Shown here: in pieces, positions 1,751 to 56,513 of the stretch
Layout of the letters: each line of letters starts with the position of its first letter
Position numbering within the stretch: position 1 is the first letter of the stretch
From: Piromyces finnis finn
Lineage: Eukaryota > Fungi > Neocallimastigomycota
Length of the DNA: 64,000 nt
Assembly (NCBI GenBank): GCA_002104945.1
Contig: MCFH01000059.1
Span: 124,001 to 188,000 of the forward strand
Direction: 5' to 3'
Position numbers and translations under genes: made by a program
The notes under the pieces: generated by a model
What the model was told of the DNA's origin: nothing
Database searches by the model: none
What the model saw: the letters and a program-made list of their open reading frames with translations, nothing else

Positions 1751-4165
1751 ATGTCAAGTGAAGATAACAGTATCATGAATAATAAGGTTAATGACACTAT
1801 GGAAAATAAAACAGATGACCAAATTACTAATCCAGCTATTGCCGGTGCTAGTACCCCAAACCAAGTTAATAATGAAAAAGAAAATGAACATTTAGCTGAA
1901 GTCAAAAATAATAAGATGAAGAATGAAGATCAATTAAATTTACCAACATACGAAGAAGCTGTTAGTTTTCAATCATTTGTAGATAATTTGGAAACACCTG
2001 GAGAAAATGTACAACCTAATTCATCTTTTTACATTTCAAACAGTTTAAATATAAATCAACAACAATCACAAATGAATGAAAAACCACTTCATTCCACAAC
2101 TCCTGCTCCAAGTTATAATTCTGTACTTCCTCAACAATTATTACAACAATACCCTAGTCAACCTAGTCAACCTCTTCAACAACAAAATGATAATTCAAGT
2201 TATTTACAAAGTCCATCTAATGCTGGAAATGTTTCTTTATTAGAAGGACAGCCTTCTAAGCCATTTAATTCATCTTCAACATCAACTCCAATACCATCAG
2301 CTCCAGTTATTTCCGGTTCAAACATTTATCCATCAGCTCCAACTAATTCCTGTTCAAATGTTTATCCATCAGCTCCAATAGCTGATTCATCCATTTCTCC
2401 ATCAACAACTACACCTTATCCACCGGTACCACAAGGTTCATACATGCAACCACCAATGGTTTCAGGTCAATATAATCCATCTATTCCACAATTTGTTAAA
2501 CATCGTTTTGATACAAAAAAACCTGAATCTGCTAGTAATCAAAATTTTGAAACATGTTTTGATGGGGAATATGTTGATATGAATGGTTGTAATACCATTG
2601 GAACAGGTATTATTGGTTCAAGAAAAACTCAAGTACGAGCATTAGCTCGTGACAATATTATCAAGAGTAGCATTGGATTAAGTATTGTTGATATTAGAGG
2701 GGCTCGTATTTTAAATGGTGAATCTAGAATTGTTTTCGATGGTACTCTCGGTAAACTTATTTTTGTTGTACCAAAGTATATTTCAATCATTATGGAAGAT
2801 CAATTTTGTATTGGTGAAGTATTTAGTTATCGCCCAACAGAAATTCCTGTAGATGAATCCATGAAAAAAGGTTTACCAGTTCTTCGTGTAGTTGTCAAAA
2901 ACTCGGTTGGTGATATTAATATTATTGAAAAGGAAGCCGATGTTAATATTTCTTCTGATTCCTTGAACAATGAGCTTAAAAAGTTAAGAAAGCAATATGG
3001 TAAAAAGAATAAGCATAATAATAATGGTAGTAGTAGTAATGCTCCAGCTGTTGGTGGCGCTTCATTAGTTAGTTTTAAAACCAATTTTATGAAAAGTTTT
3101 AATAATGCAAAGAATCAAATTTCTGGTGTCCAAAATAACAAGCCAGTAAATACCACACCATATTCACAATATGGTCAACAGCCTTATGGTGCAGCCTATA
3201 CTATGCCACAACCTTATGGATCACCTTATGGTACCCCTAATGGAGCCCCTTATGGTGCACCAGCACAAGCTCATTATGCTTATCCACCACAAGGATACCC
3301 ACCACAAGGATACCCACCACAAGGATACCCACCACAAGGATATTCACCACAAGGATACCCACCACAAGGATATCCACCACAAGGATATCCACCACAAGGA
3401 TATCCACCACAAAGCAATCCAACTGCTGCTGCTCCATATCCAAACTCTTCTCTTTCTACTACTTCATCTACTACCACACCTTCTAATGCTTCCACAGTAC
3501 CACCAATATCTACAACTCATACTTCAATAGCACCATCTACTACTATTTCATCAACTACTTCATCTTCTGCTGTCCAACCAACTGCCTCTCCATACGGTGC
3601 TCCATCACAACCATATGGTAGTCAGTCTTCTGCTCAACCAACTGCCTCTCCATACGGTGCTCCATCACAACCATATGGTAGTCAGTCTTCTGCTCAACCA
3701 ACTGCCTCACCATATGGTGCCCCATCACAACCATATGGTAGCCAATCTTCTACTGCTCAACCAACTGCCTCACCATATGGTGCTCCATCACAACCTCAAA
3801 AGGAAGGAACAACTAATGCACCAGCATCAACAGGATCATTTTCATCTTCTATTCCATCTTATTCTTCTTATTCACCATATGGTGCACCATCTCAACCTTA
3901 TGGATCATCTGCTCAATCTTATAGTGCTCCATCCTATCCTTATGGTGCTCCAACTCAACCCTATGGTGCTCCAGCTTCAACAGCAGAAGCCAGTAATAAT
4001 ATTTTAACTCCTACTACTACTACCATTTCTTCTTCTCCATTAGCTATTGCTCCAACTTCTGCTACTACACCACCACTAATGAATTCTTCTGTTTGTTCTA
4101 ATTCTTCTGATATCAAAATTAATGAAACTAGTCAATATCCTTATCCACCACCATCTCAAAAATGA
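1751..4165 (+). CDS. Pro/Ser/Gln/Tyr-rich protein with central LiaF C-terminal/DUF2154-like beta domain, PSAP motifs and GYPPQ repeats
   Basis: 804-aa uninterrupted ORF. The only globular-looking part (~2570-2935: IIGSRK..SSIGLSIVDIRGARI..TLGKLIFVVPKYISI..IGEV) follows the G..D(L/I)..A....G.V.I.VP pattern of DUF2154/LiaF-C. Three PSAP motifs, ~8 GYPPQ repeats and ~57-60 bp QPTASPYGAPSQPYGSQSS repeats. Confidence 0.8.
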   Translation: MSSEDNSIMNNKVNDTMENKTDDQITNPAIAGASTPNQVNNEKENEHLAEVKNNKMKNEDQLNLPTYEEAVSFQSFVDNLETPGENVQPNSSFYISNSLNINQQQSQMNEKPLHSTTPAPSYNSVLPQQLLQQYPSQPSQPLQQQNDNSSYLQSPSNAGNVSLLEGQPSKPFNSSSTSTPIPSAPVISGSNIYPSAPTNSCSNVYPSAPIADSSISPSTTTPYPPVPQGSYMQPPMVSGQYNPSIPQFVKHRFDTKKPESASNQNFETCFDGEYVDMNGCNTIGTGIIGSRKTQVRALARDNIIKSSIGLSIVDIRGARILNGESRIVFDGTLGKLIFVVPKYISIIMEDQFCIGEVFSYRPTEIPVDESMKKGLPVLRVVVKNSVGDINIIEKEADVNISSDSLNNELKKLRKQYGKKNKHNNNGSSSNAPAVGGASLVSFKTNFMKSFNNAKNQISGVQNNKPVNTTPYSQYGQQPYGAAYTMPQPYGSPYGTPNGAPYGAPAQAHYAYPPQGYPPQGYPPQGYPPQGYSPQGYPPQGYPPQGYPPQGYPPQSNPTAAAPYPNSSLSTTSSTTTPSNASTVPPISTTHTSIAPSTTISSTTSSSAVQPTASPYGAPSQPYGSQSSAQPTASPYGAPSQPYGSQSSAQPTASPYGAPSQPYGSQSSTAQPTASPYGAPSQPQKEGTTNAPASTGSFSSSIPSYSSYSPYGAPSQPYGSSAQSYSAPSYPYGAPTQPYGAPASTAEASNNILTPTTTTISSSPLAIAPTSATTPPLMNSSVCSNSSDIKINETSQYPYPPPSQK

Positions 4166-21206: not shown

Positions 21207-23961
21207 ATGAACAGTTTAATAATAATTTCCATTCTTTTTTCCTTGTTCAATTATTGTAATAGTCTTTTAATTTTACCATTTCCAGATGTTGCTCCAACTA
21301 TAGCATCAGGTGATAAAATTAGTATTCCAATTTCAAACGATAAATTCATTATTTCAAATTGTGCTGCTTTAGGTAATTCTTATTTATATACTGAAGATAA
21401 CGAAAGAACCGAATATTCACCAGTTGCTTATTTCAGAAATGGTGAAACTTTAGAAGTAAGAATTACATAATTTAAAAAAAATATTATTTATATATATTAT
21501 TTATATATTGTTATTATTTATCACATTTATTATGTTTGTATATCCTATTTATTTCATAATTAAACTTTTTCTTTATTTTTTTATATAAAAACTTTTGGAA
21601 TAATATAAAAATAAAATTTTATTATAGTTATACATTCCAGAAATTAATGGTGATGCATCAAAGAAATTCTTCGTAGTTGTTGAATTACCATTAGCAGAAG
21701 CTATTATTAAAACAGGTTCTTTTAACGTTTCTGGTGGTTCTGCAATCAATTTACCAAAAACAGATGGTTGTGGTAAGGAAGTTAAATTTTCCAACAAAGA
21801 AACTAACATCGGTTCAGATGTTAAGAGTAATGAAAGTAACAATAGCAATGAAAATAATAAGGAATCTACAGAAAACAAACCCAACAATAAAGATAATATT
21901 GTTGAAAATGACAATCAAAACAGCTCAAATATTTTAAGTGCTGCTAACACTTCAACAACTACTAATAACAATCAAGAAGAACAAGGTTCCAATCATGCTG
22001 TTATTATAGCTTGTGCAGGGTAATTTTTTTTATTAATTTCAATATATCAATTATAAAATAACTAAAATAAAAATATATTAATATTTCAATAATTATTATT
22101 GTATTTCAGAACAAGTGTCGTTGCTTTAGTTGTTATCAGTGGTTTCGTATTTTTAAGAGGAAAGTCTTATATGAAAGGTGACAGCGATGTTTCTTATACA
22201 TCATTAAATTATAATAACACTTATTCTCCAAAACCATTTAATGCTGTTGGAGGATTATATGATAATTTAACAAAATCAAATGATGATTTCGATCGTGATT
22301 ATCAATTAAGATGTTTAAATGATGTCCCATCTCAAGTTAGCTATCCAGTTTCATTAAGTGATGGATCTTGTGTTAACATGGATAAAAATACAGATATTTT
22401 TGAACAAACTGATGATGCTCCAGAAGTCCCTGAAATTCCTCAAGAATTACCAATTACTAAGCATATTGTAGAAGAAATTGTTATTAATCCAGAAAAGGTT
22501 CTTAGTGAAACAATTAATTCAAATGCTGTTTCTGCTGTTGTCACTACAGCTTCTGTAGCTTTAGCTATTAATGAATGCGGAGATCTTACTATTGATAAAT
22601 CAAACTTTGTTTGCGAAGATAGTAAATTAGAAAAGTCAAACTCTACTTCTAGTAGTGGTTCATGCAGTACTTGCTCAGGCTCTTGCTCATGCTCTTCATG
22701 CTCTTCTTGTTCATGTTCATGCAGTGGAAAGGGCAGCTGTTCTTGTTCTTGCACTGAATCCTCTAGATTCACCTCAACTATCAATAATGAATCATCATTA
22801 AAGTTACTTTCATTAGACTTTAATTCTACTAATGGTGATACAACCAGAGGATATTCAGTATTTGTTGATAAGGAAAATGATAGCAAAAGAATGACTAACT
22901 ACACTGAAACCAATTATGATGACAGTCGTAGAATGACAAACTACACTGAAACTAATTATGATGACAGTCGTAGAATGACAAACTACACTGAAACTAATTA
23001 TGATGACAGTCGTAGAATGACAAACTACACTGAAACCAATTATGATGACAGTCGTAGAAACACCGCATACACTGATTACACTGAAGACAGTCGTAGAAAT
23101 ACCGCTTACACTGATTACACTGAAGACAGTCGTAGAAATACCGCTTACACTGATTACACTGAAGACAGTCGTAGAAATACCGCTTACACTGATTACACTG
23201 AAGACAGTCGTAGAAACACCGCTTACACTGATTACACTACTGAAGACAGTCGTAGAAACACCGCTTACACTGATTACACTACTGAAGACAGTCGTAGAAA
23301 CACCGCTTACACTGATTACACTACTGAAGACAGTCGTAGAAATACCGCATACACTGATTACACTGAAGGATCAAGTTACACTAATCGCGACTCACGTTAT
23401 TCAGAATATACTAGTCGTGATTCACGCTACTCTGAATATACTGAAGGTTCAAGCTATACTTCTTGTTCATGCTCTGAATCAGATTGTGACTGCAGTCATA
23501 GAAAGTCTGAATACACTACTGACTACTCTTCTTACACCGATAGTAGAAGACAAACTTATACTACTACCGATTATAGTAGTTACACTAGCGACTTTTGTGA
23601 AACCCAAGACGCCTCTAGTGATTTCCCATCAAAAATTTTACCAAACACTTCAATTGAACCATTCGGTTATTCAATAACTAATGAAAGTTTAATTGCTATA
23701 CAATCAAAGCAAAATGTCATGCGTGATAGTATTTGTAGTTTATTACCAGAAGTACCAATTGAAGGAAAGCCACCAAAGATTGATCTTGAATTCATAGCCC
23801 AAAAGGATTATCAAACCTCCAAATCTGGTGAATTAAATGTTAAAACAAAGGATGTTCTTCGTGTAATTGAAAGTTTAGATGGTGGTTGTTATATGGTAGC
23901 AAATGCAAACACAGGAAAATCAGGAAAAATACCAGCTTACATTATTAGCACATTATTATAA
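21207..23961 (+). CDS. Type I membrane protein: signal peptide, ectodomain, one TM, repeat-rich cytoplasmic tail, C-terminal SH3 (3 exons: 21207-21455, 21628-22019, 22110-23961)
   Basis: Signal peptide MNSLIIISILFSLFNYCNS. GT/AG introns join the frames and rebuild the TM AVIIACAGTSVVALVVISGFVFL. C-terminal FIAQKDY..ELNVKTKDVLRV...GKSGKIPAYII is an SH3 signature. Confidence 0.85.
22891..23366 (+). repeat. Coding tandem repeats: 4x MTNYTETNYDDSRR (42 bp), 4x NTAYTDYTEDSRR (39 bp), 3x NTAYTDYTTEDSRR (42 bp) plus a partial unit
   Basis: Directly visible in the DNA and in the translation. Confidence 0.95.
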
Positions 23962-24897
23962 ATCTAATTTTACAATCATATATTTATTCCAACCATTAAT
24001 TAAAAGATGATTACTATTTTTTTTATTTTATTTTCAATTATAATAATATATATTACATTTCTTCCAATAGAAATTAAATATTATTTTTTTTTTTTACTGA
24101 ATTACAAACTATTTTTTTCTTTATAATTTTATAAAATAATGTTGAAAAAAAATTGTTTAGTATTAAATAATTTTTAACTGGAGTTTAAATTTTAATAAAA
24201 AAAAAAAAAATTTTTTTTATAAACCTCTTTAAAATTGTTTTTTTTTTTTTTTGAAACCATAATAATTTTTAAATTGTTTTATTATGCATATATAAAACAT
24301 TAATACATAAATTACTATTTTTTATATAATAATAATAATTAAATAAATAAATATATATGAAAAAAAAATTTTTTTTTTATTTATAATTATTTTATATAAT
24401 CGAAAAAAAAAAAATAAGAAAAGGTGATTGAAGAAAAAAAAAGAGAAAAAATACTATCAAATAACAATAGAATACTAATAAAACCCATTCTATAAAATGG
24501 TATGATGATAATGATCAATTCCTTTATAATACTCTTAAGAATTTTATTAATAGAGATAGAACAGTATCATGAAATACAATGTGTTATAAAAATATTTTTT
24601 TTATCATTAAATAAAATTTAAAAAGTTTAGATTTTCATTCAGGGTAAAGAAAAAGAAAGAGTTTTTCATTTTAGCCATAAATTTTAGGAAGGGTATTTTA
24701 TCCTTTTTTTTTTTTTTTAATTATATAAAGTTTTACCACCACCACACCTTTTTTTTTTTAATTTATTTTTAAAACATATTTATGTAGTCACCTTCCTTTT
24801 TAGGTGAATTACTGTATGATTTAATTATTTTTTTTTTTAAAAAAATAAATTAAATAGAAACCTTTTAGGAAAAAAAAATATAAATATAAAAGAAAAA

Positions 24898-25408: not shown

Positions 25409-26854
25409 ATGGATAATACAGAATTATTTTATAAAGAATTAAATAGTACTTGTAATCCTGATACATTATTAAAAATTGCAAAAAAAGGAATTTTTTTATA
25501 TGAGCCTTTATTTACAAATAATAAAATAAAAGATCATGAAAATGTAATTGAAATCAGTATATTAGCTGGACAATATTTTATGATATTTAATAGAAAGCAG
25601 TATCAAAAACTAGTAGAATTAATTTCTCGGAAAGATTTCACAATTTATCCATATCTAAATAATCATTATATTATTTTTAATATATTTATTATAAATAAAT
25701 ATTTTATAGAACAATTAATGATCGAAAAAAATAATGATTTTTTATTATTAATACATGAGCATTTATCTAATGAGATAACAATATTATTGTATTTATATAA
25801 GTATAATTATATATCCACTAAAATATTTTATTCATTTTATTATTATGGTAATAAACATAATTATTTTAATTTTGTATTTGAGTTGTATGAATATTTTTAC
25901 CATAATGAATTTAAAAATTTGTTTGAAAATACATTTGATGCTCTCGATATTACTGGTAAATCTAAAATAATTTCTGAAATGTTACTTTTTTATGGAAGAG
26001 ATATTAATATATTTAAATATTGTATAAAGAAGATTAAGCAATATCATTTATATATACGATATGATTATTTTCGAATACCTTTACATTTTCCAATAGAGTA
26101 TTTGAAAGAATATAATGATGATGTATTTTTTCCAAATGAATTGTTTGTTACTTGTGAAGATAAAAAAATTGAAGAATTTATAAATACATTTTTTTCTGAT
26201 TATTTCATTCTTGTATTAAGTAATAATTATAATGATAAATATAAATGTTATGAAAAATTTTATTCAAGATATAATATTGATATTGACAAACTTTATAAAT
26301 TTAAATATTATAAAAAAAAGGATATAAATTTAGATTATATATATAATTCAGAAGAATATAAAAATTTCTTAGAAGGAAATAAGAATTTTAAGGGAATAAC
26401 ATATAATACAAGAGATAATATTATAAATTTAATTAATATAAAAAAAGAAAAGTACAAATACTATAAACTTAAAAGAATGTTTATAAAAAAGAATTTTAAC
26501 AATTTATATTTTGTTAAAAAGTACTTGAAAGAGTATAATGAACTTGAAAAAATATTAAGTGATCCTGAATATATTTTAAGTCAAAATATTGAAATTTGCA
26601 TTAATGAATATTATGTTATGTTATTTTGTTGTTCAATTTCAATGATTCACAATAATTTTAATTATTTTATTATTAAAGCATTATTATATAATATTTTTGA
26701 TAGTTCTTATTTTGATGTACTTGATAAGAAACTTGTTTTTTTTAAGTATACGTGTGAAGAACCATATATTAGAAAAATATTTAATATATTATGTTCAACT
26801 CCACATGAAGTATTTAATAATTATATTTTAATAAAAGATTATAATCCTAATTAA
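25409..26854 (+). CDS. Intronless Tyr/Phe/Lys/Asn/Ile-rich hypothetical protein (ORFan, possibly viral origin)
   Basis: 481 codons open in ~80% AT DNA is very unlikely by chance. No signal peptide and no recognised domain. Confidence 0.7.
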   Translation: MDNTELFYKELNSTCNPDTLLKIAKKGIFLYEPLFTNNKIKDHENVIEISILAGQYFMIFNRKQYQKLVELISRKDFTIYPYLNNHYIIFNIFIINKYFIEQLMIEKNNDFLLLIHEHLSNEITILLYLYKYNYISTKIFYSFYYYGNKHNYFNFVFELYEYFYHNEFKNLFENTFDALDITGKSKIISEMLLFYGRDINIFKYCIKKIKQYHLYIRYDYFRIPLHFPIEYLKEYNDDVFFPNELFVTCEDKKIEEFINTFFSDYFILVLSNNYNDKYKCYEKFYSRYNIDIDKLYKFKYYKKKDINLDYIYNSEEYKNFLEGNKNFKGITYNTRDNIINLINIKKEKYKYYKLKRMFIKKNFNNLYFVKKYLKEYNELEKILSDPEYILSQNIEICINEYYVMLFCCSISMIHNNFNYFIIKALLYNIFDSSYFDVLDKKLVFFKYTCEEPYIRKIFNILCSTPHEVFNNYILIKDYNPN

Positions 26855-27061: not shown

Positions 27062-27520
27062 ATGGATTTGCTATTAATATCGTTGATAACTTTTACATTT
27101 TTTGCTAATTATATTTTAGCGAAAATAGATAAAAAGGAGTTCTGTTTGCATAACTATAATGGTATCACAAAAATAGTTGATCCCTTTTATATCAACTCTA
27201 AAAATGAAACGATTTATTTTGATACTATTGAAGAATATTCGAAATACATTGGACCTACATGGTTTGGCGTAGCCTATTGTGGTAATAATACTATTGTTAA
27301 TAATGTAGGACGTTATTTTAAATATATTGGAGATGATGTTAATCCATCAACAGATATTACACCAACAGAAATAAGCGATAAATCAGATGAAGCAGAAACT
27401 GAAGGAGTATTTGAAGAAGATGACATGTACAACGATGATGCAAATGAAGTTTTTGTTGTTAATAAAGTAAGTTCCAAGAAGCAATCTAAAGTCAAAAGGT
27501 ACATGAATTTTGTTAAGCGA

Positions 27521-27551
<31 letters not shown>

Positions 27552-30500
27552 GTGATAATGGTAATGATAATGGTAATGACAATAAAAATTTTTTGAATCT
27601 ACATACCAAAGAAGAATTTACAAATTATTATAGTAATCTTTATGATAAGTTGATGGATCCTGAGAAGCCATTAAAATGTGTTCCATTGAATAGTGTTAAT
27701 CCAGCGTACAATCCCTATCATCCTTTATTGATTAGAACAACCAATAGAGAAAGAGCAAATATTATAAATAATATGGGTACTGTGTATGGAGGTAATAGTA
27801 ATAAAATAATGGAATTTATTAAAGATAGTAAAGATATACAACCATGTGGAATTGTTATGAAGATGAAAGATTCATCTATTTCGTGTAGCGTTCGAATTTC
27901 AAATACAATTGATGAAAGTGTGACTATTACAGACAGCAATGGGAAAACTTATCATCAAGCATATGGAGTTGTTTATAGTGATACTAATTCATTTTCTGAT
28001 GATATTAATACAGTTTTAGAATTGTCAGTATCTTCGACAGAGAGTAAATCACTTTCATATTCCGAATCCGATACGGTTTCTAAATCAGCTGAAAGAGTGC
28101 TTTCATATACAAAATCCAAAGGTAAATCTGTTACAGATTCAAGTGAAGACACTCACACTGATACTCACGAGAGCTCTTATGCTTATACAGAAAGTGAAGA
28201 ACATTCTCATGCAAGAAGTGATGGTGGTGAAGTTGTTGATGAGACTAATTGGAGTAAAAGTGAAGAAATATCACATGTTGAAGAATATAGTCGAATGGAA
28301 AGGAAGGATTATGAAAATGCCAAATCAAAAGTAAAAAGAAATGATGTAGTATCGTTATGCAAACGAGGAGGTATTTGTATTCCTTGTGATGTTGTTGATA
28401 CCGTTACAAATGTAGTTGGTACTGCTGCTAATATAGGCTTGCAAATACAATCTAATAATTTACAAAAAGAGTCTAATGATATAGCCAGAAATTCCACAGA
28501 AGCTGCTTACATAGCTAATGATATCGCTAGAAATTCCACAGAAGCTGCTTTTATTGCTAATAATATAGCAAATAATGCCAATGAGATTGCAAAAGACGCT
28601 AATGCTGCTTCATGGAAGGCAAATAATTTAACGTTACAGTCGATAGAATCTCAAGAAGATATAGCAAGGAAAGACAGAGAATTGCAAAGAGAACTTAATG
28701 AACTTAATGCACAACAAGAACTTGCTATTGCATTTGCAGGTACAAGAACTACAAGTGATAGTTATAGTACGGTTAAAAGTGAAGGTGGAAGTCATAGTCA
28801 GTCTCAAAATTGGTCTGATACCTATACCGATTCTACAGGTATTAGCAACACCTGGACTACATCTGATGGATATTCCGATTCACATACTCAAGGTCATTCG
28901 GAAACAACTACTGAAGAAAGTACTCGATCTGATTCTATTTCACATTTATTAACAAATACATTTACTAAAGATAAAGGTTGGAGTTTTGAATCTTCTAATA
29001 CTAATTCAGCATCCAATAGTTATTCTTACGGCAAATCAAATACAATATCCCATACAAATGATATTTCCATAGACCAGTCTATTGAAGTATCGGCTGAGAG
29101 ATCATATCAGAAATCGGTTTCAAGATCTAACACCGAAGAACATAGTAAAACTCTCGAATTCCATATTCCAGATAATGGTTGTTACAATCTAACAGCTGTT
29201 CCTTTATTTAGATCAGAAGTAAATATTTGGGCGTGTGGTGACTATGATATATACGGAAATTATTATACACGTTTTCAAAAAACCATTCATCCAATTGAAT
29301 TAACAGATTTTGCCAAAACACCAATTGAATGCAATAAGGAGCAAATTGATCCAGTTATTATTGATAACAATTATCAGAATAGAAATTATATTCCTGATAA
29401 CGGCATGCCTAAAAACACACTAATTTCAGGTCAAGTTTTAAATAAAGGCAATAAAATTAAATCACGCAATGGTAAATATTATTTTGGATTATTGGATGAT
29501 ACAGGAGAATTAGCTTTATGTAAAGGTGAGTTCAAAAAAGAAAATATTGTATGGAGTAATGGTATAGATTTTTTGAAAGATGATAAATACAATCTTAAAT
29601 TTAAAGTAAATTATAACGGACATTTGGTTGTTACAGCAAAGAATATATTTTCAAGATATAGAGTAATGGATACTGATCAAAATAATGATGTAAATATTAA
29701 TATTAATAATAATTCCAAGTTATCAAAGCGTCGTAGTCCATTAGATAGATTATCTTCATTACTAGATAATAAAACAACAACAACAACGACAACAACTTCT
29801 ACTACTACAACAACTACAACTACAATTAATACTACTACAACTAATGAAACTAATTCTATTGCTATTACAACATCCACAATCGAAAATACAAATAAAAATA
29901 CTAGTAAAGAGAGTTCAACATCTTCATCTAATTTAATTGTTTCAAAGGCAACCGAGAATTTAAGTAGCTTAATATTTTCTAGTACTTATTCTACCACATC
30001 TAATGAACCTACATCGACTGCTGTTAACACATCTACTAATACAAGTAGTTCTGAACCAGTTAAAATGGCTAATTATAGAAATACCGAGGAATTCATTATA
30101 TGGGATTCATTACCTAAAGATTTACCATTCAATGTAGGCTACTTAGATGGATCGGGATACTCATTGGTCTTAAATGACGACGAAAATACCGATTATTGCA
30201 CTTTAACATTATATGATGGTGTAGGTGTAAAAATTTGGGAAATTAAGCCAGGGCAGTATGATTATATAGGATATGCGTTTCCAAGAGAATATAATATGCC
30301 ATTAGCATTCGAAACTAAAAAAGCTGAAAAAGATATTAGTAAGTATGATTTTCACAATGTTATTAGACCGGAAGTAAAAGATGTATTTATTCATAAAATG
30401 AGCTTCACTTGTGATACAAAGATGCGCGAAAATGAGGCGTTGGTATCAAGTAATGGCAAATATAGATTTTATGTACAACCATCAGGTAATTTAGTTATTA

Positions 30501-33500
30501 AAGAAAATTCCAGAACGATGTGGTCTTCATTAACTGCTAATATTGAAATATTTGAGGCACCATATATTTTGTCATTCTCACCATTGGGCGAACTATTATT
30601 GAGAGATAAAAATAAGTTTTTAATATGGCACACTGTAAACGGAGATTCATTTAAAAATACAGAAAAGATTGAAGACATTCGTAAATTTTCCTTAATATTA
30701 TCAGATGATGGGGAATTATATATCGAGGATAATTATCATAATATGTATTGGAGTTCATGGCCTGTAAGATTATATAATCAACATATACGATATGTTGAGC
30801 CAATGATTTATGATATATCCATATGTAAGGAAACTATAAGAAATAAATACATCTACGATCTCTTTTCCAATCCAAATATTTATAATTATTATGAAGATCC
30901 AGATGACTCAACTACCTATGTTCGTAAATACTATGTTAATAATTTATTACCAAATGAGTCATTGCTTTCAATATACCATGCTACTTTAAATGTTACAGAT
31001 ACTGAAGTTGTATTTTATTATAAGTATAAAGATAAAATGCATTCAAAGGAATTGGCCAGTTGCAGTAAAAATTCGAATGTTAAGGAATTGAAATTAGAAA
31101 AAAATGGTTTATATTTGTATTGTAATGATAACACCTATAAAACTATTGCTATGGTACCAGAGAATCAAAAATATTATCGTCTTTCTATTGAGAAAAGATA
31201 TAAAATGGATTATCCTGATTTAATGATATACAACACCAAAACTAAGGAGTTCTTATGGGGATTGAATCCAGTTAAATTTTTGTATAGTGTTGTTCCCAAT
31301 AAAACTAAATATGGTGAATACAATAGAATTGTTACTGCTAATACATTTACAACATTTGATAGATTAATATCTTATAATGGTGGTGGAAATCATGTGTATA
31401 TGTCCAATTCTCATGGATTAGAATTGAGTAATTCAGCATACACTGAATTTAAGAGCTTATCCCTATTGGATGATAACTTTTATATTAATGATGAAATAAT
31501 TATTAAGAATGAAAAAAATATGGAACTTTCTTATGATGGTATCAATGATAAATTAATAATCACAAATGATGCCGATACATTGTGGGAATTATTTGGAAGA
31601 AAAAAATGTAATAAATTTATTTCTTCTGATGAAAATTGTAATACTCTATATTCCTTTAGTGAGTTTTACAATGACGAAAATGAAAAAACTTTTCATTTAG
31701 CTTCATATTGGCTATTATATAAAAGTAATACGTTTTATATTTTTAATATAATAGAGTATCTTAAAACCATTAATGAGCCAATATTTTCAATGAAACTAAA
31801 TGAAAATGGTGACATTACATTAAACAATAATAAATATATATTTCACAAAGAATATTACAAAAAGGATCAATATTACGAATTAATTACCAATAATTATAAT
31901 TTAATATTAAAATCAAGTACTGGAGAATATAAATGGGCACTTGGAGATATCTTCAACCGTGCCTATAATGCAGATATCTTAAAAATTGGAGATTCTTTCA
32001 AAGAAGGTGAAATGTTATTCTGTGATGATTATTCTCTAATTATTCTTGGCGGTAAATTATTGTATAGAGACCACAAAACATTTAATGAAGTCGACATTTT
32101 AAATTTAAAAAATAACTATGTTTCAAAATTAGCTATAGGATCTAGAAGTTTAACATTCTTTGATAAAAGTAATGAACCAATTTATGCGATTATGTCACCT
32201 GATAGTGTTGATTATCCTGACAGCTGTCTTAAATGTGATAAAATCAATAAAGGAGTGTATTGGGATGACGGTAATGGAAATTCATTATGGAGTTATCCTA
32301 AGAATTTACCAAAAACCGATACTACTACAATTACTTCAACTACAACCACAACAACAACTACTACTACTACCACTAGCATTATGCAAACTCCTCAAACTAT
32401 TGTTTTTACTACACATGTTACTAACTACTCAACCGAATATATAACAGAATCACAAACTAGTATAGCCACTAAAACTAGTTATAGTTATGCAACTTATACC
32501 AATGTAAGTTATCAAGGAAGTATTGGATCAAAGTATTACCTAGGTATAAATGAATTAAAAGAATATGTCACACTTGAAGCTAAATATGGTGGAAATAATA
32601 AACAGCCAAGCAAGTATATTAAATGGTTAATTAAATCTGAAAAGGAACCTTCATATATGCATATAGTAAATAATAATGGTGAAATATCAAATTATTGTTT
32701 AGACGTAGGTAAAAGTAAAAACAAATATTCTTACTATTTAAGAATTAGTAAATGTTCAGAAGACACTTACTTATTTAAATATAATGTACCATTTACTGAT
32801 TATGAAAATTCAAAAATAAATAATCCAAATAATATTATTGTTTATAAAAACGATAATTCTTTATTTACTAATAGTAACGGTGTACCATATTGTATTTATT
32901 ACAGCGATACATTGCGTATAGAAGAGTGTAAAGATCCTAAAGATTATGAAAATTTCAATTGGAAAAAATACAATAATGGCTATTTTACTGAAACTTCCAC
33001 AAAGACTAAATTACAAACTTCTACTGAATATCTTACCAAGAGCACAGTAGTACCAACCATATTAACTTCAACAATAACTTCAATTTTATTACCTACTTTT
33101 TCACCAACTACGTCTACTACAACGAATATAAGTAGTATTACTACTAAGGATATAAATCCTACACAATCCATTGATTTACTATTTATTCCTTTAACCTTTA
33201 AAGGTATACAAAATGGAAATTCCAGTATTTTCTTAAGTGTTTCAAAATTAGGAACAAATGAATCTTTTGATATGAGAATATCTGACAGCTACTATACATG
33301 GTTTGTTACTTCAACTACAAATCCTTCTTATCTTTATCTATCTGAAGGTATTTCAGGAAATATTGGAAATCCAACAAATTATTGTTTGGATTTAGGCGAC
33401 TTTGTTCATAATGAAAAGGATAACTATAATTATTTACGTATCGAAAATTGTTCTAATGTAAAGTATAAATTTATGTATAATGCTTCAGATAATGCTAAAT

Positions 33501-33658
33501 ATGGAACAATTAATGTTTACGATATCAATGGTAATCCTCTTTCTATTAATAATGACTTTATGTGTATTTACTATTCAATGACACCTCGTGTCGATAAATG
33601 TGTTGATCCATCCCTTAATACTAAAATGGGTTGGGAAATGTCTCTAATAAAAAATTAA
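27062..33658 (+). CDS. Secreted 2198-aa multidomain protein: candidate aerolysin/ETX-MTX2-like pore-forming region, bulb-type lectin repeats, two ricin-B-like C-terminal domains
   Basis: Signal peptide; several KR/RR sites; alternating S/T-x arms at aa ~274-410 and ~560-699 ending in LEFHIPDNGCYNL. B-lectin motifs (LISGQVLNKGNKIKSRNGKYYFGLLDDTGELAL; LVSSNGKYRFYVQPSGNLVIKENSRTMWSS). Duplicated W..T..PSY....NYCLD(V/L)G....LRI.C units; Thr-rich linkers. Confidence 0.75.
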
Positions 33659-42052: not shown

Positions 42053-44148
42053 TTTGGTATGTTACAGCAAAAGGTTCTTTTATTGGAGATGCTTTTAAGA
42101 GAGCAGAACTTTTTGAGTTGACGGATAATGAAATACCAACTTTTGATATAAAAATATCAGATGAAGAATTTAAAGCCTTAACATTGGAAGGTCAAAAAGG
42201 TGCAGCAGCTGCTAATGTTCCAGAGGAAGAAGAATTAAAAATTAAAGATGGTGTATTAAAAGTTGATTTAAATGGGTAAAATACAATAGAATATTATTTA
42301 ATAATAATAAAAGTTTAACCGAAAAATATTTTTTATAAATTTTTTTATTTAATGGTCGAAAAAATATTAAAAAGTTATTCAAGATACCTATAATAAATTG
42401 TTCACTTTTATTTTGTTAATATATATAATATTTTTATAAAAAAAAATTATGATATTGTATATTCAAATTAAAATTTATAAAATAAATTAACCCAATTTTT
42501 ATTTGTATTTAATATATATTAAAAAAAAAAAAAAAAAAGAAAAGAAAAAATATTTAAAAAAATAACTCTTTCTATTGGTGGTAATTCCTCTCGCGGTTTC
42601 GGTAAACAAGGTTATAATATCAAAATTAGAGGTAAAGGAGATTTATACGGACGTACTCAAATAAGACTTCGTCCAGATGCACGTGAACCAACTTATTTAA
42701 GATCAAAGTTATCTTGTGATATTCATAATCGTTTAGGATTATCATCCATTTCATCTAATTATGCCACATTATACATTAATGATGAATTTATGGGATTATA
42801 CGTTTTAATGGATTCAATTAACTTGTCTTGGATAAAATATGTCTATGGTGAAAATGATACTACCAGTTTATATCAATGTAAAAATGTTAAAAATGATTTA
42901 TCTCTTGAAAAATCAGCTACAGGTTGTATTAATAAAAATGAAGAAGTTTTGGATAATACCCAATGGATCGAGTTTTTAACTACTATTAGTAAGGCACAAT
43001 CTGCTGAAGATCTTGAAGCAATTTTTGATATTGATACTTTTTTAACTGAAATGGCATTTGAATATTTAGTTGGATCGTATGATCATTTTACAAATTTTGG
43101 TCATAATTATTATTTATATAAACCTCAAAATGATAAATGGAAAATTCTTTTATACGATTACGATAGTGAATTTGGTCAAGAAATTGCCATGGGTATTAAT
43201 AGAGTTAAAAATAATCAAGGCAATAATAGCACGGATTACACTAGTTTTACTTTTGCCCAAACAACCAGAGATATTCACTTGGTAGATGTTTTAATTTTAA
43301 ATAATTCCACTCGTTTCAACACTATTTTGAAGAATGTTGTTGAAAAAGTTTTTAATCCAGCTACCCTTTTCCCAAGAATTGATGAATTGAAAGAAATGAT
43401 TAGACCTTATGTTGAAAAAGATAAAATTCCAAATGAACAAGGTAAATACCCAGGAAAACTTAATGAAAAATCGGATCATTACTCTTTAGCTCAATGGGAT
43501 GCCAATTGTGAATTTACAAATGTTAAAAGTATTCATAGTGGTACCAAGGCATATGGTTTAAAATATTGGATTCTTGCTAAATATAGATATGTTTGTCAAT
43601 CCCTTAAAATGGAATGTGACTCTACCTATTTAGATGAAAATTACGCCTATTCTATAGATACTTCTGTAGAACTTTCAGGTGAAGATATATTTTCTGGAAT
43701 GGATAATCTTCTACCACCACCACCAACAACAACAACAACAAATCAAACTCCAACAGAAACTAAAATTGAAAACCCAACTCAAACCACTACTAATGTCATT
43801 TCAAAACCATCAGAAAATACAACAACAACATCATCATCATTACCCCCAACATCAACACCAACATCAAAGCAATATCAATGTTGGTCTGAACTCATAGGTT
43901 ATCCATGTTGTGATCCAAAGAATAATGTTGTCTATTCACATGATAGCTATGGTGAATGGGGATATAATTTTAAAACACAAATGTGGTGTGGACTTACAGC
44001 ATTTGAAGAACATGAAAATGATGAAGAATGTTGGTCGGAAGAATATGGTTATCCTTGTTGTTTGGGTTGTACCGTATATGAAACGGATGATCAAGGTCAT
44101 TGGGGTTATGAAAATAACCACTGGTGTGGTATTCAATCATTTTGTTAG
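42053..44148 (+). CDS. cotH: CotH kinase-family protein with two C-terminal fungal dockerins (cellulosome component); intron 42276-42539; true start not found
   Basis: Exon 42053-42275 (WYVTAKGSFIGDAFKRAELFELTDNEIPTF) splices to KITLSIGGNSSR..KQGYNIKI..LRPDAREPTYLRSKL..YINDEFMGLY..YDHF..HNYYLY..YDYD. Thr linker; dockerins CWSELIGYPCC..WGY..WCG and CWSEEYGYPCC..WGYENNHWCG. Confidence 0.9.
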
Positions 44149-55133: not shown

Positions 55134-56513
55134 ATGAAATACCTTAGTTTAACTCTCTCATCTATTCTCTCCATTACATATATTACTGCTGCTCCAACTT
55201 ATACAAGTAGATGTGGTATTGGATATGGTGAATGTGATCCTGGCTTTTGCTGTAGTGAATTTGGTTGGTGTGGTCAATCTAATAGCCACTGTTTAATTTC
55301 AAATGGTTGTCAATCTGAGTTTGGTAAATGTATTGGTGATATTTCAACAAATGGTCAATGTGGTCCACAAAATGGTTATACTGTATGTCCATCTGGTAGA
55401 TGCTGTAGTGAACATGGATGGTGTGGAACAGAAAGTATTCATTGCGGTACAGGATGTCAATCTGAATTTGGTCAATGTAATAATTCTTTACCACCAACTT
55501 TAATAACAAGTACCGTCCCAAAAACCACCACCATACCTAGTACTCCTAAAACTACAACCACAACTAAAGCTACTACAACCAGAACTACTACAAAAAAGAC
55601 TACTACTACAACTAAGGCTACAACATCTAAAGCTACAACCACTAGAACGACTACAACTAAAACTAGTACATCTCCTACATCAATAACTAGATGTGGTAAA
55701 GGATATGGTGAATGTAGTCCAGGCTATTGTTGTAGTAAATTTGGATGGTGTGGTAAAGAAGACAGCCATTGTAAACTTTCAAAAGGATGCCAATCTGAAT
55801 TTGGTACATGTACCGGACTTTCTACTAATGGTAAATGTGGACCTAAGAATGGTGACACTGTATGCCCATCCGGTAAATGCTGTAGTGAACATGGATGGTG
55901 TGGAACCGAAAATGCTCATTGTGGTTTTGGATGCCAGTCAGAGTTTGGAAAATGTTCTACCCTTAAATCATGTTCTCAAAAAAATGCTTATGGAACTATT
56001 GATAAAGAAGCATTACCAAATGCACCATATATTTGGAGCTTCCTTTTAAGTAAAATTGGAAATGTTTATGGTGCTGCAGGTATGATTGGAAATCTATATG
56101 CTGAATCTCGTCTAAGATCAAATGATCTTGAAGGTATTTATGAAAGAAGTCTTGGAAAAACTGATGAACAATATACAAAGGATGTTGATAATGGAACATA
56201 TAAAAACTTTATATCTAATTCAGCTGGATATGGTTTAGTACAATGGACTTCAAGTAAACGTAAACAGGGCCTTCTTAATTATGCCAAAGAACAAAAAAAG
56301 AGTATTGGAGATCTTCAAATGCAACTTGACTACTTCTGGATAGAACTTAATAAGAATTATAAAGATGTTCTTAGTGTTTTAAAAAGTGCTATATCAGTTA
56401 AGGAAGCTTCTAATAAAGTCGTTTTAGAGTATGAAATTCCTAAAGATCGAAGTGACAGTGTATTAAAAAAGAGAGCCAATTTTGGAGAAATGTTAAAATT
56501 AGCTTGTAATTAA
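55134..56513 (+). CDS. Secreted protein: four CBM18 (hevein) chitin-binding modules plus C-terminal phage-tail-lysozyme (Phage_lysozyme2-like) domain
   Basis: Signal peptide; 4x C..CCS..GWCG....C..GCQSEFG.C; Thr/Lys linker; C-terminal IWSFL..GAAGMIGNLYAES..GYGLVQWT..RKQGL..QLDYFWIEL..AS..V..EYEIP..R. Confidence 0.88.
   Translation: MKYLSLTLSSILSITYITAAPTYTSRCGIGYGECDPGFCCSEFGWCGQSNSHCLISNGCQSEFGKCIGDISTNGQCGPQNGYTVCPSGRCCSEHGWCGTESIHCGTGCQSEFGQCNNSLPPTLITSTVPKTTTIPSTPKTTTTTKATTTRTTTKKTTTTTKATTSKATTTRTTTTKTSTSPTSITRCGKGYGECSPGYCCSKFGWCGKEDSHCKLSKGCQSEFGTCTGLSTNGKCGPKNGDTVCPSGKCCSEHGWCGTENAHCGFGCQSEFGKCSTLKSCSQKNAYGTIDKEALPNAPYIWSFLLSKIGNVYGAAGMIGNLYAESRLRSNDLEGIYERSLGKTDEQYTKDVDNGTYKNFISNSAGYGLVQWTSSKRKQGLLNYAKEQKKSIGDLQMQLDYFWIELNKNYKDVLSVLKSAISVKEASNKVVLEYEIPKDRSDSVLKKRANFGEMLKLACN

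Follow-up and report, generated by a model that had tools for sequence, protein, structure and literature searches.

A pair of length-matched, Ser/Thr-striped arms in a secreted multi-lectin protein of Piromyces finnis: a candidate long beta-hairpin module of zoosporic fungi

A two-arm module with strict Ser/Thr periodicity

A stretch of 64,000 nucleotides of Piromyces finnis finn (contig MCFH01000059.1, positions 124,001 to 188,000; hereafter called the window, to whose numbering all coordinates refer) contains an intact open reading frame (ORF) of 2198 residues (27062..33658, + strand, as are all features of this gene) for a secreted multi-lectin protein with an unusual two-arm module. Arm 1 (aa 274-412, 139 residues, with base cysteine Cys275; 27881..28297) and arm 2 (aa 559-706, 148 residues, ending in L-E-F-H-I-P-D-N-G directly before base cysteine Cys707; 28736..29179) each carry Ser or Thr on alternate residues in a single phase, and are bounded on the outside by Cys275 and Cys707. 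On the basis of their matched and co-varying lengths, we propose that the two arms probably form one in-register antiparallel beta-hairpin. The module is an undescribed one, confined to zoosporic fungi. The region had been marked in a first-pass annotation of the DNA (27881..29160, corresponding to aa 274-700 of the ORF) as a candidate giant beta-barrel pore or needle with two symmetric arms in a secreted, lectin-bearing protein.

The proportion of Ser and Thr is 34% in arm 1 and 41% in arm 2, as compared with 20% in the whole protein. The autocorrelation of these residues changes sign at every lag from 1 to 8 (beginning with -0.38 and +0.34 in arm 1, and running from -0.42 and +0.27 to +0.48 in arm 2), and their positions fall almost entirely in one parity class, i.e. 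42 versus 5 in arm 1 (42/47 in one phase) and 51 versus 7 in arm 2 (51/58), values that were reached in 0 of 20000 shuffles for either arm. A Thr-rich linker elsewhere in the same protein has no such preference (28 versus 29). Autocorrelation and parity together confirm the alternating S/T-x pattern that had been described for both arms. Opposite to the Ser/Thr stripe, the residues are for the most part polar or charged; few hydrophobic positions are conserved on the arms outside the first ~20 residues of arm 1.

The near-equality of the arm lengths is real and conserved. Arm indels were found in none of eight out of nine full-length homologues from Neocallimastigomycota, at 30-83% identity, and the arms measure 139 and 148 residues in these homologues, with a centre of 118-282 residues between them; the five other regions compared (N-terminal domain, linker, pre-arm region, centre and post-arm region) have 1-11 indel events each. 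Both the Ser/Thr stripe and many positions other than Ser/Thr are conserved column by column, and the motif L-E-F-H-I-P-D-N-G-C at the end of arm 2, noted previously as a hydrophobic-x-I-P motif, is present and moderately conserved. Because of the absence of indels, the fixed lengths and the column-wise conservation, we consider the arms to be structured elements rather than spacers. Direct homology of arm 1 and arm 2 was considered as a cause of their equal lengths and rejected, the similarity between them being weak (BLASTP E-value 0.011; hhalign probability 49%).

A separate observation concerns a protein of Anaeromyces robustus (P0023, ORX75597.1), in which the arms are 121 and 103 residues long by alignment, the centre is missing and most of the Ser/Thr stripe is lost. 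Either degeneration of the copy or an error in the gene model could be the cause.

Matched arm lengths in relatives without a helical insert

In the P. finnis protein a long insert, predicted to be helical, separates the arms, and this insert is missing from the chytrid relatives and from a "type 2" group of paralogues. Arm lengths were compared in four chytrid proteins, P0045, P0057, P0091 and P0060, from Geranomyces (two proteins), Rhizophlyctis and Thoreauomyces. Automatic anchoring of tip and base by regular expressions was noisy and was replaced by explicit motif and cysteine landmarks. In all four proteins the cysteines are arranged mirror-symmetrically about a central hydrophobic segment, and can be used to measure the N-terminal arm, the tip loop and the C-terminal arm as Cys-to-Cys gaps. 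These gaps are 135, 30 and 140 residues in P0045, 159, 34 and 164 in P0057, 159, 33 and 164 in P0091, and 243, 29 and 248 in P0060. The C-terminal arm is therefore 5 residues longer than the N-terminal arm in all three length classes. Two further members, P0092 and P0093, have no tip cysteines; from their base cysteines to the hydrophobic segment there are 167/173 and ~170/170 residues, respectively, and over the six helix-less members the N-side and C-side lengths correlate with r=0.96. In pairwise alignments, the arms differ in length solely in the part within ~45 residues of the tip, and this applies to both of them.

In each of the four chytrid proteins (4/4), the Ser and Thr residues of either arm are an even number of positions away from the tip cysteine, and the two stripes would consequently lie on one face, provided that the tip cysteines are opposite each other. 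The co-variation of arm lengths in homologues, which had been put forward as a check on the original idea, is hence seen as 135/140, 159/164, 159/164 and 243/248. The matched pair of arms of the earlier hairpin proposal has held up, being indel-free and co-varying in length; a straight unbroken strand of ~140 residues is not established.

The tip and the central region

The most hydrophobic segment between the arms is central in every homologue examined, and is either Gly/Ala-rich or Phe/Gly-rich. In the P. finnis protein this putative tip is a Gly/Ala-rich segment at the peak of inter-arm hydropathy (aa 438-462, including Cys439 and Cys442; 28373..28447); its counterpart in the chytrid proteins is situated at the exact midpoint between the arms. 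The chytrid tip loops are 30-35 residues long, bracketed by cysteines, composed for about half of Gly, Ala, Ser and Thr, and include 5-7 residues that are aromatic or aliphatic. Hydrophobic residues that alternate along a short Gly-rich stretch are found in the tip loop only. The insertion loops of aerolysin-type pore-formers are ~25 residues long and Ser/Thr-rich (PMC12691639), so that the chytrid tip is near to them in size.

The tip of the P. finnis protein is preceded by a charged linker, recognized from the sequence (aa 413-437, with Cys433; 28298..28372), which varies in length among homologues, and is followed by a heptad-type insert with the pattern A-N-x-I-A-x-x (aa 468-558; 28463..28735). 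The insert was modelled by AlphaFold2 as one long helix (predicted local distance difference test, pLDDT, 54-74), and it ends in a conserved hydrophobic L-A-I-A-F-A-G just before arm 2. At the DNA level, a 42-bp tandem repeat (28473..28569; 2.3 copies, 87% match) encodes two heptads per unit, and the number of heptad motifs in homologues ranges from 0 to 20. The heptad-containing centre consequently changes length quickly, whereas the arms do not.

Cysteines around the tip differ among family members. In the helix-less Neocallimastix paralogue P0038 (aa 402-479), the tip cysteine pair encloses 78 residues, and its flanks mirror each other (C-D-S-N-G-W-N... and ...N-N-G-W-N-G-N-H-E-Q-C). The P. 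finnis protein has three cysteines (aa 433-442), all on the N-terminal side of the hydrophobic segment, and this odd number might allow an inter-chain link.

Distribution and searches for known relatives

A HMMER search of 1.84 billion representative proteins identified 56 relatives of the module. All named relatives are from zoosporic fungi, either Neocallimastigomycota (Piromyces, Neocallimastix, Anaeromyces, Pecoramyces) or Chytridiomycota (Geranomyces, Thoreauomyces, Rhizophlyctis). The earlier framing of the protein as a weapon against rumen competitors is too narrow in this respect, since the module is also present in soil chytrids. The family is multi-copy within species and divergent, as is common for proteins of attack and defence, which by analogy may suggest such a role here. 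Many metagenome-derived members are on contigs about as long as the gene itself, as would be expected of transcript assemblies.

No Pfam family was found on the arms at E<=10 in searches with the whole protein, eight pieces of it, six distant homologues and 28 alignment members, nor at E<=0.1 in 27 homologues scanned singly. Likewise, PDB searches with the module alone and with a family profile, which matched lectins only, provided no sequence relatives of the arms; the module alone had insignificant matches of its helical centre to designed antiparallel coiled coils (E 0.07). With an AlphaFold2 model of aa 21-770 (28 sequences) as query, the best Foldseek hit in the PDB had an E-value of 0.19 and a TM-score of 0.03 with herpesvirus capsid chains, which is noise. 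No description of the family was found in the literature. The aerolysin/ETX-MTX2 kinship that had been suggested for the arms is accordingly not borne out in Pfam or in PDB sequence searches, and Foldseek gave no match to it with a model that is of low confidence in the arms.

Proposed mechanism

On the basis of sequence comparison, the hairpin formed by the two arms would be a very long beta-ribbon that grows from a disulfide-containing base domain and ends in the Gly-rich hydrophobic tip. A ribbon that is made of only two strands of 135-248 residues each, and is polar on both faces, could not be expected to stand alone; it would need partners, and for this reason the hairpins of several protomers may join. 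The many lectin domains could gather such protomers on a glycan-covered surface, and the joined hairpins would then form a water-filled, Ser/Thr-lined beta-barrel tube, a closed barrel being the most economical form. Residues in beta-strands advance by 2.6-3.4 Å each, and at this geometry the tube would be ~35-45 nm long for the P. finnis protein and up to ~65-80 nm for the Thoreauomyces protein. The hydrophobic tip would enter a lipid membrane behind a thick wall or coat. The Cys-bracketed chytrid tip of 30-35 residues could be the equivalent of an ordinary aerolysin-type insertion loop, with the arms as its extramembrane extension, and the Piromyces tip would carry in addition a lineage-specific helical coiled-coil insert of variable length.

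This full proposal, including the formation of a tube or pore, is offered tentatively, and we consider it somewhat more likely to fail than to hold. More specifically, it is rather unlikely that lectin-guided hairpins assemble into a closed Ser/Thr-lined tube of 35-80 nm that crosses a wall, pellicle or glycan coat and whose length is set by matched insertions; if true, such a tube would be several times longer than the stem of any known pore-former.

Several observations weigh against the proposal. A membrane-type hydrophobic face on the arms is not supported, and the core of the tip, which comprises ~12-20 residues and is only weakly hydrophobic in chytrids (KD15 -0.2 to 0.6), is marginal for spanning a bilayer. 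The helix of ~90 residues that AlphaFold2 places in one piece between the arms would hold the arm ends apart unless it is folded back. The co-variation was measured in four mutually related chytrid proteins that represent three length classes, and the disulfides in the pairing model are assumed. Structure prediction is of low confidence in the arms, both in the model of aa 21-770 (mean pLDDT 52, below 40 on most of the arms) and in a second model of the helix-less paralogue P0038 (31 sequences; mean pLDDT 41, ~20-25 on the arms). Moderate confidence is reached in the first model only for a base domain, to which the pre-arm and post-arm regions contribute together with the beginning of arm 1 and the end of arm 2; within the arms, this model has three short helices, located at a recurring D-x-I-x-x-x-hydrophobic-E-x-S motif. 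Conserved Gly residues and a possible 46-residue repeat make a folded-up meander possible in place of a straight ribbon. Finally, neither Pfam, PDB profile nor Foldseek searches provide a sequence or fold link to any pore-former.

Alternative explanations

The evidence for paired, rigid and length-controlled arms is shared with the main rival explanation, namely that the paired-arm ribbon, alone or as a small oligomer, is a rigid stalk or spacer that holds the lectin array at a set distance without making a pore. Its target surface could be the wall or membrane of the fungus itself, with the hydrophobic tip as an anchor, or a substrate particle, and one may think of it as a folded version of the Ser/Thr-rich stalks found in fungal wall adhesins. 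About 1400 of the 2198 residues are lectin and other beta-rich binding-type sequence, the chytrid tip is weakly hydrophobic, and the arms are of different length in different lineages (135 to 243 residues), as might be expected of a spacer adjusted to wall thickness. In addition, the occurrence of the family in free-living soil chytrids as well as in gut fungi suggests a general role at the cell surface or in attachment. We regard a stalk as only slightly less probable than the tube or pore. Against it, no C-terminal anchor, glycosylphosphatidylinositol (GPI) signal or wall-linkage motif was found in the 2198-residue protein, the stalks of known adhesins, quite unlike the arms, are free to vary in length and sequence, and a polar two-stranded ribbon would still require partners for stability. 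Less probable is a compact polar beta domain, in which the arms fold back on themselves, for instance in units of ~46 residues, and the Ser/Thr faces pack into a sandwich or solenoid with a binding or scaffolding function; the symmetry of the arms would then reflect a pseudo-twofold fold. An hhalign self-match of arm 2 at a shift of 46 residues (probability 77%, E-value 2e-5), the inter-arm unit matches (49%), conserved Gly at repeat-equivalent positions and the AlphaFold2 strands of ~11-25 residues, instead of 140, would all suit such a domain. The repeat is nevertheless suggestive for arm 2 only and should be read as a caveat and not as a finding, being weak in arm 1 and in an ungapped profile test (z=2.5 for arm 2 and 1.3 for arm 1). 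Moreover, the arms differ in length between proteins by 24 and 84 residues, in each case to exactly the same extent on the N-terminal and the C-terminal arm, and neither figure is a multiple of 46. A conserved hydrophobic core is nearly lacking across ~200 residues, and the AlphaFold2 confidence is very low.

The long uninterrupted period-2 pattern with a small-residue face, combined with the lack of a stable monomer prediction, could also be explained by striped strands that stack between molecules in a cross-beta, amyloid- or silk-like fibril, forming a lectin-decorated adhesive or matrix. This is very unlikely: the face opposite the stripe is highly charged and conserved residue by residue, and stacking would not call for two different arms of one chain to be paired exactly. 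Arms that are disordered or O-glycosylated spacers, or that vary independently in length, had been named beforehand as an outcome that would speak against a pore; in the corresponding rival explanation, disordered and O-glycosylated Ser/Thr spacers would lie on either side of a coiled coil. The high Ser/Thr content and low AlphaFold2 confidence are in keeping with such spacers, but they are excluded by the zero indels and fixed lengths at 30-83% identity, where the true linkers are variable, by a single-phase parity that is missing from the Thr linker, and by the exact co-variation of the arms; we give this explanation next to no weight.

Comparison with known systems

As in aerolysin/ETX-MTX2 proteins, which the module would resemble most in its way of working, the P. 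finnis protein is secreted and has lectins fused to a module with a Ser/Thr-rich alternating element, here a putative beta-hairpin, and a hydrophobic tip; lectin-fused examples of the aerolysin type are the haemolytic lectin of Laetiporus and natterin-like proteins. The differences are considerable. The putative hairpin has 135-248 residues per strand as opposed to a few tens, the arms are polar on both faces, the tip has a helical insert, and the protein has 2198 residues as opposed to 300-700, with no sequence or fold match. Anthrax protective antigen-type proteins (component B of binary toxins), in which the stem is ~10 nm long, share the idea of a long extramembrane polar beta-barrel stem with its tip in the membrane, with a possible length here of 35-80 nm. 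This likeness is one of general description; no Pfam or PDB sequence match to binary-toxin B proteins was found, and no features of protease activation or of a translocase were seen.

Fungal adhesin stalks of the Flo and Als type similarly have a Ser/Thr-rich stretch between the signal peptide and binding domains. Such stalks are repetitive, length-variable and poorly conserved, whereas the arms are indel-free, phase-locked and length-matched, and are found in a protein without a GPI signal; no Pfam flocculin match was obtained. Lectin-like bacteriocins (putidacin L1/LlpA, pyocin L1 and L2) provide the best PDB matches of the lectin region (E-values 2.9e-10 to 9e-10); they are secreted proteins with bulb-type lectin domains in tandem and are directed against other cells. 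They are ~270 residues long and lack the arm module; the match is limited to the lectin domains, which plant bulb lectins match too. We would not assign the module to any named family, and would class it with a "lectin plus beta-hairpin stem" kind.

If the arms, at 135-248 residues per strand, do form a single in-register hairpin, no longer element of this kind has to our knowledge been described, and it would be a natural protein "ruler" that changes its length in evolution through insertions matched between the two strands; residue-exact matching of arms of this length would surprise specialists. If a barrel forms as well, it would indicate a way for a pore-former or injector to reach membranes that lie behind a thick wall, and early-diverging fungi, i.e. 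gut Neocallimastigomycota and soil chytrids, would gain an unrecognised family for attack, defence or attachment. On a more modest reading, a well-delimited new module is added to a multi-copy secreted family of ~2000-residue proteins whose present annotation is only "hypothetical" or "bulb-type lectin domain-containing"; the landmarks of the module are C-x-P-L-x-S...N-P-Y-H, a base cysteine pair, striped arms, a hydrophobic tip and a W-x-C motif.

Lectin domains

The lectin-bearing character of the protein, as claimed initially, was verified with Pfam and PDB profiles. A bulb-type (monocot mannose-binding) lectin region with at least two domains (aa ~775-1232; 29384..30757) is interrupted by a Thr-rich linker (TRF arrays at 29767..29852). 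The family profile matched bulb lectins of the PDB in two regions (E-values 2.9e-10 to 1e-6), the best match being putidacin L1 (E=2.9e-10), together with pyocin L1 and plant bulb lectins, and the single sequence matched them at aa 1115-1232 (E-values 0.0016-0.0055). The Pfam B_lectin domain at aa ~1168-1233 (E=1.3e-6, 29.3 bits) is below the gathering cut-off of 32.4, and is above the cut-off in homologues, which carry PF01453 and PF00652. The profile matches confirm the bulb-type lectin region as genuine, a conclusion that concerns the lectin part and not the arms. Ricin-B-type families (PF00652 and PF14200) are found at the C-terminal end of homologues; the C-terminus of the 2198-residue protein gave no Pfam or PDB sequence match, to ricin-B lectin (PF00652) or otherwise.

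Gene and protein layout

The protein begins with a signal peptide (aa 1-20; 27062..27121), which is the sole 19-residue window with a mean Kyte-Doolittle hydropathy above 1.5 and has a cleavage-type context as judged from its sequence. This N-terminal stretch is the only transmembrane-like one, and with no C-terminal anchor the protein is, as had been stated, a secreted one. It is followed by a Cys-containing domain (aa 26-100; 27137..27361) that is conserved in homologues and was modelled with a pLDDT of 73-90. The pre-arm base region (aa 191-273; 27632..27880; pLDDT 60-79) contains the motif C-x-P-L-x-S-x-N-P-x-x-N-P-Y-H, which is present in all homologues including those of chytrids. The post-arm base region (aa 707-770; 29180..29371; pLDDT 70-82) contains Cys707 and W-A-C-G (aa 723-726), with a 16-residue spacing that is constant in all homologues. 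The C-terminal remainder (aa 1233-2198; 30758..33655) consists of beta-rich repeats and two modules separated by Thr linkers.

The public gene model for this locus, ORX41591.1 (a 573-residue "partial" protein of P. finnis), is 100% identical to the ORF over 457 residues. The N-terminus of the 2198-residue protein is common to full-length homologues, and the public model badly under-calls the gene. An identical 573-residue sequence is shared by three P. finnis models located on two scaffolds, suggesting recent duplications of this locus; no second copy was found within the window.

Neighbouring genes and base composition

Directly upstream of the arm gene is a very AT-rich putative gene (25409..26854, + strand) for a 481-residue product, rich in Asn, Ile, Lys and Tyr and without Pfam match. 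Further downstream, an ORF at 42790..44148 (+ strand) encodes a CotH kinase-like domain and two CBM_10 fungal dockerins, as in cellulosome-associated proteins of anaerobic fungi. A 459-residue ORF (55134..56513, + strand) has four Chitin_bind_1 domains followed by a domain of the phage-tail-lysozyme type (PF18013, E=1.4e-25), a pairing that is unusual for a fungal gene and possibly reflects horizontal acquisition.

The window as a whole is extremely AT-rich, with a GC content of 14-38%. Two islands of higher GC stand out from their surroundings of 14-25%, one at 2001..4000 (38%), which coincides with an ORF of XYPPX repeats (1751..4165), and one at 22001..24000 (33%), which coincides with an ORF (22099..23961) whose product has a C-terminal SH3 domain.

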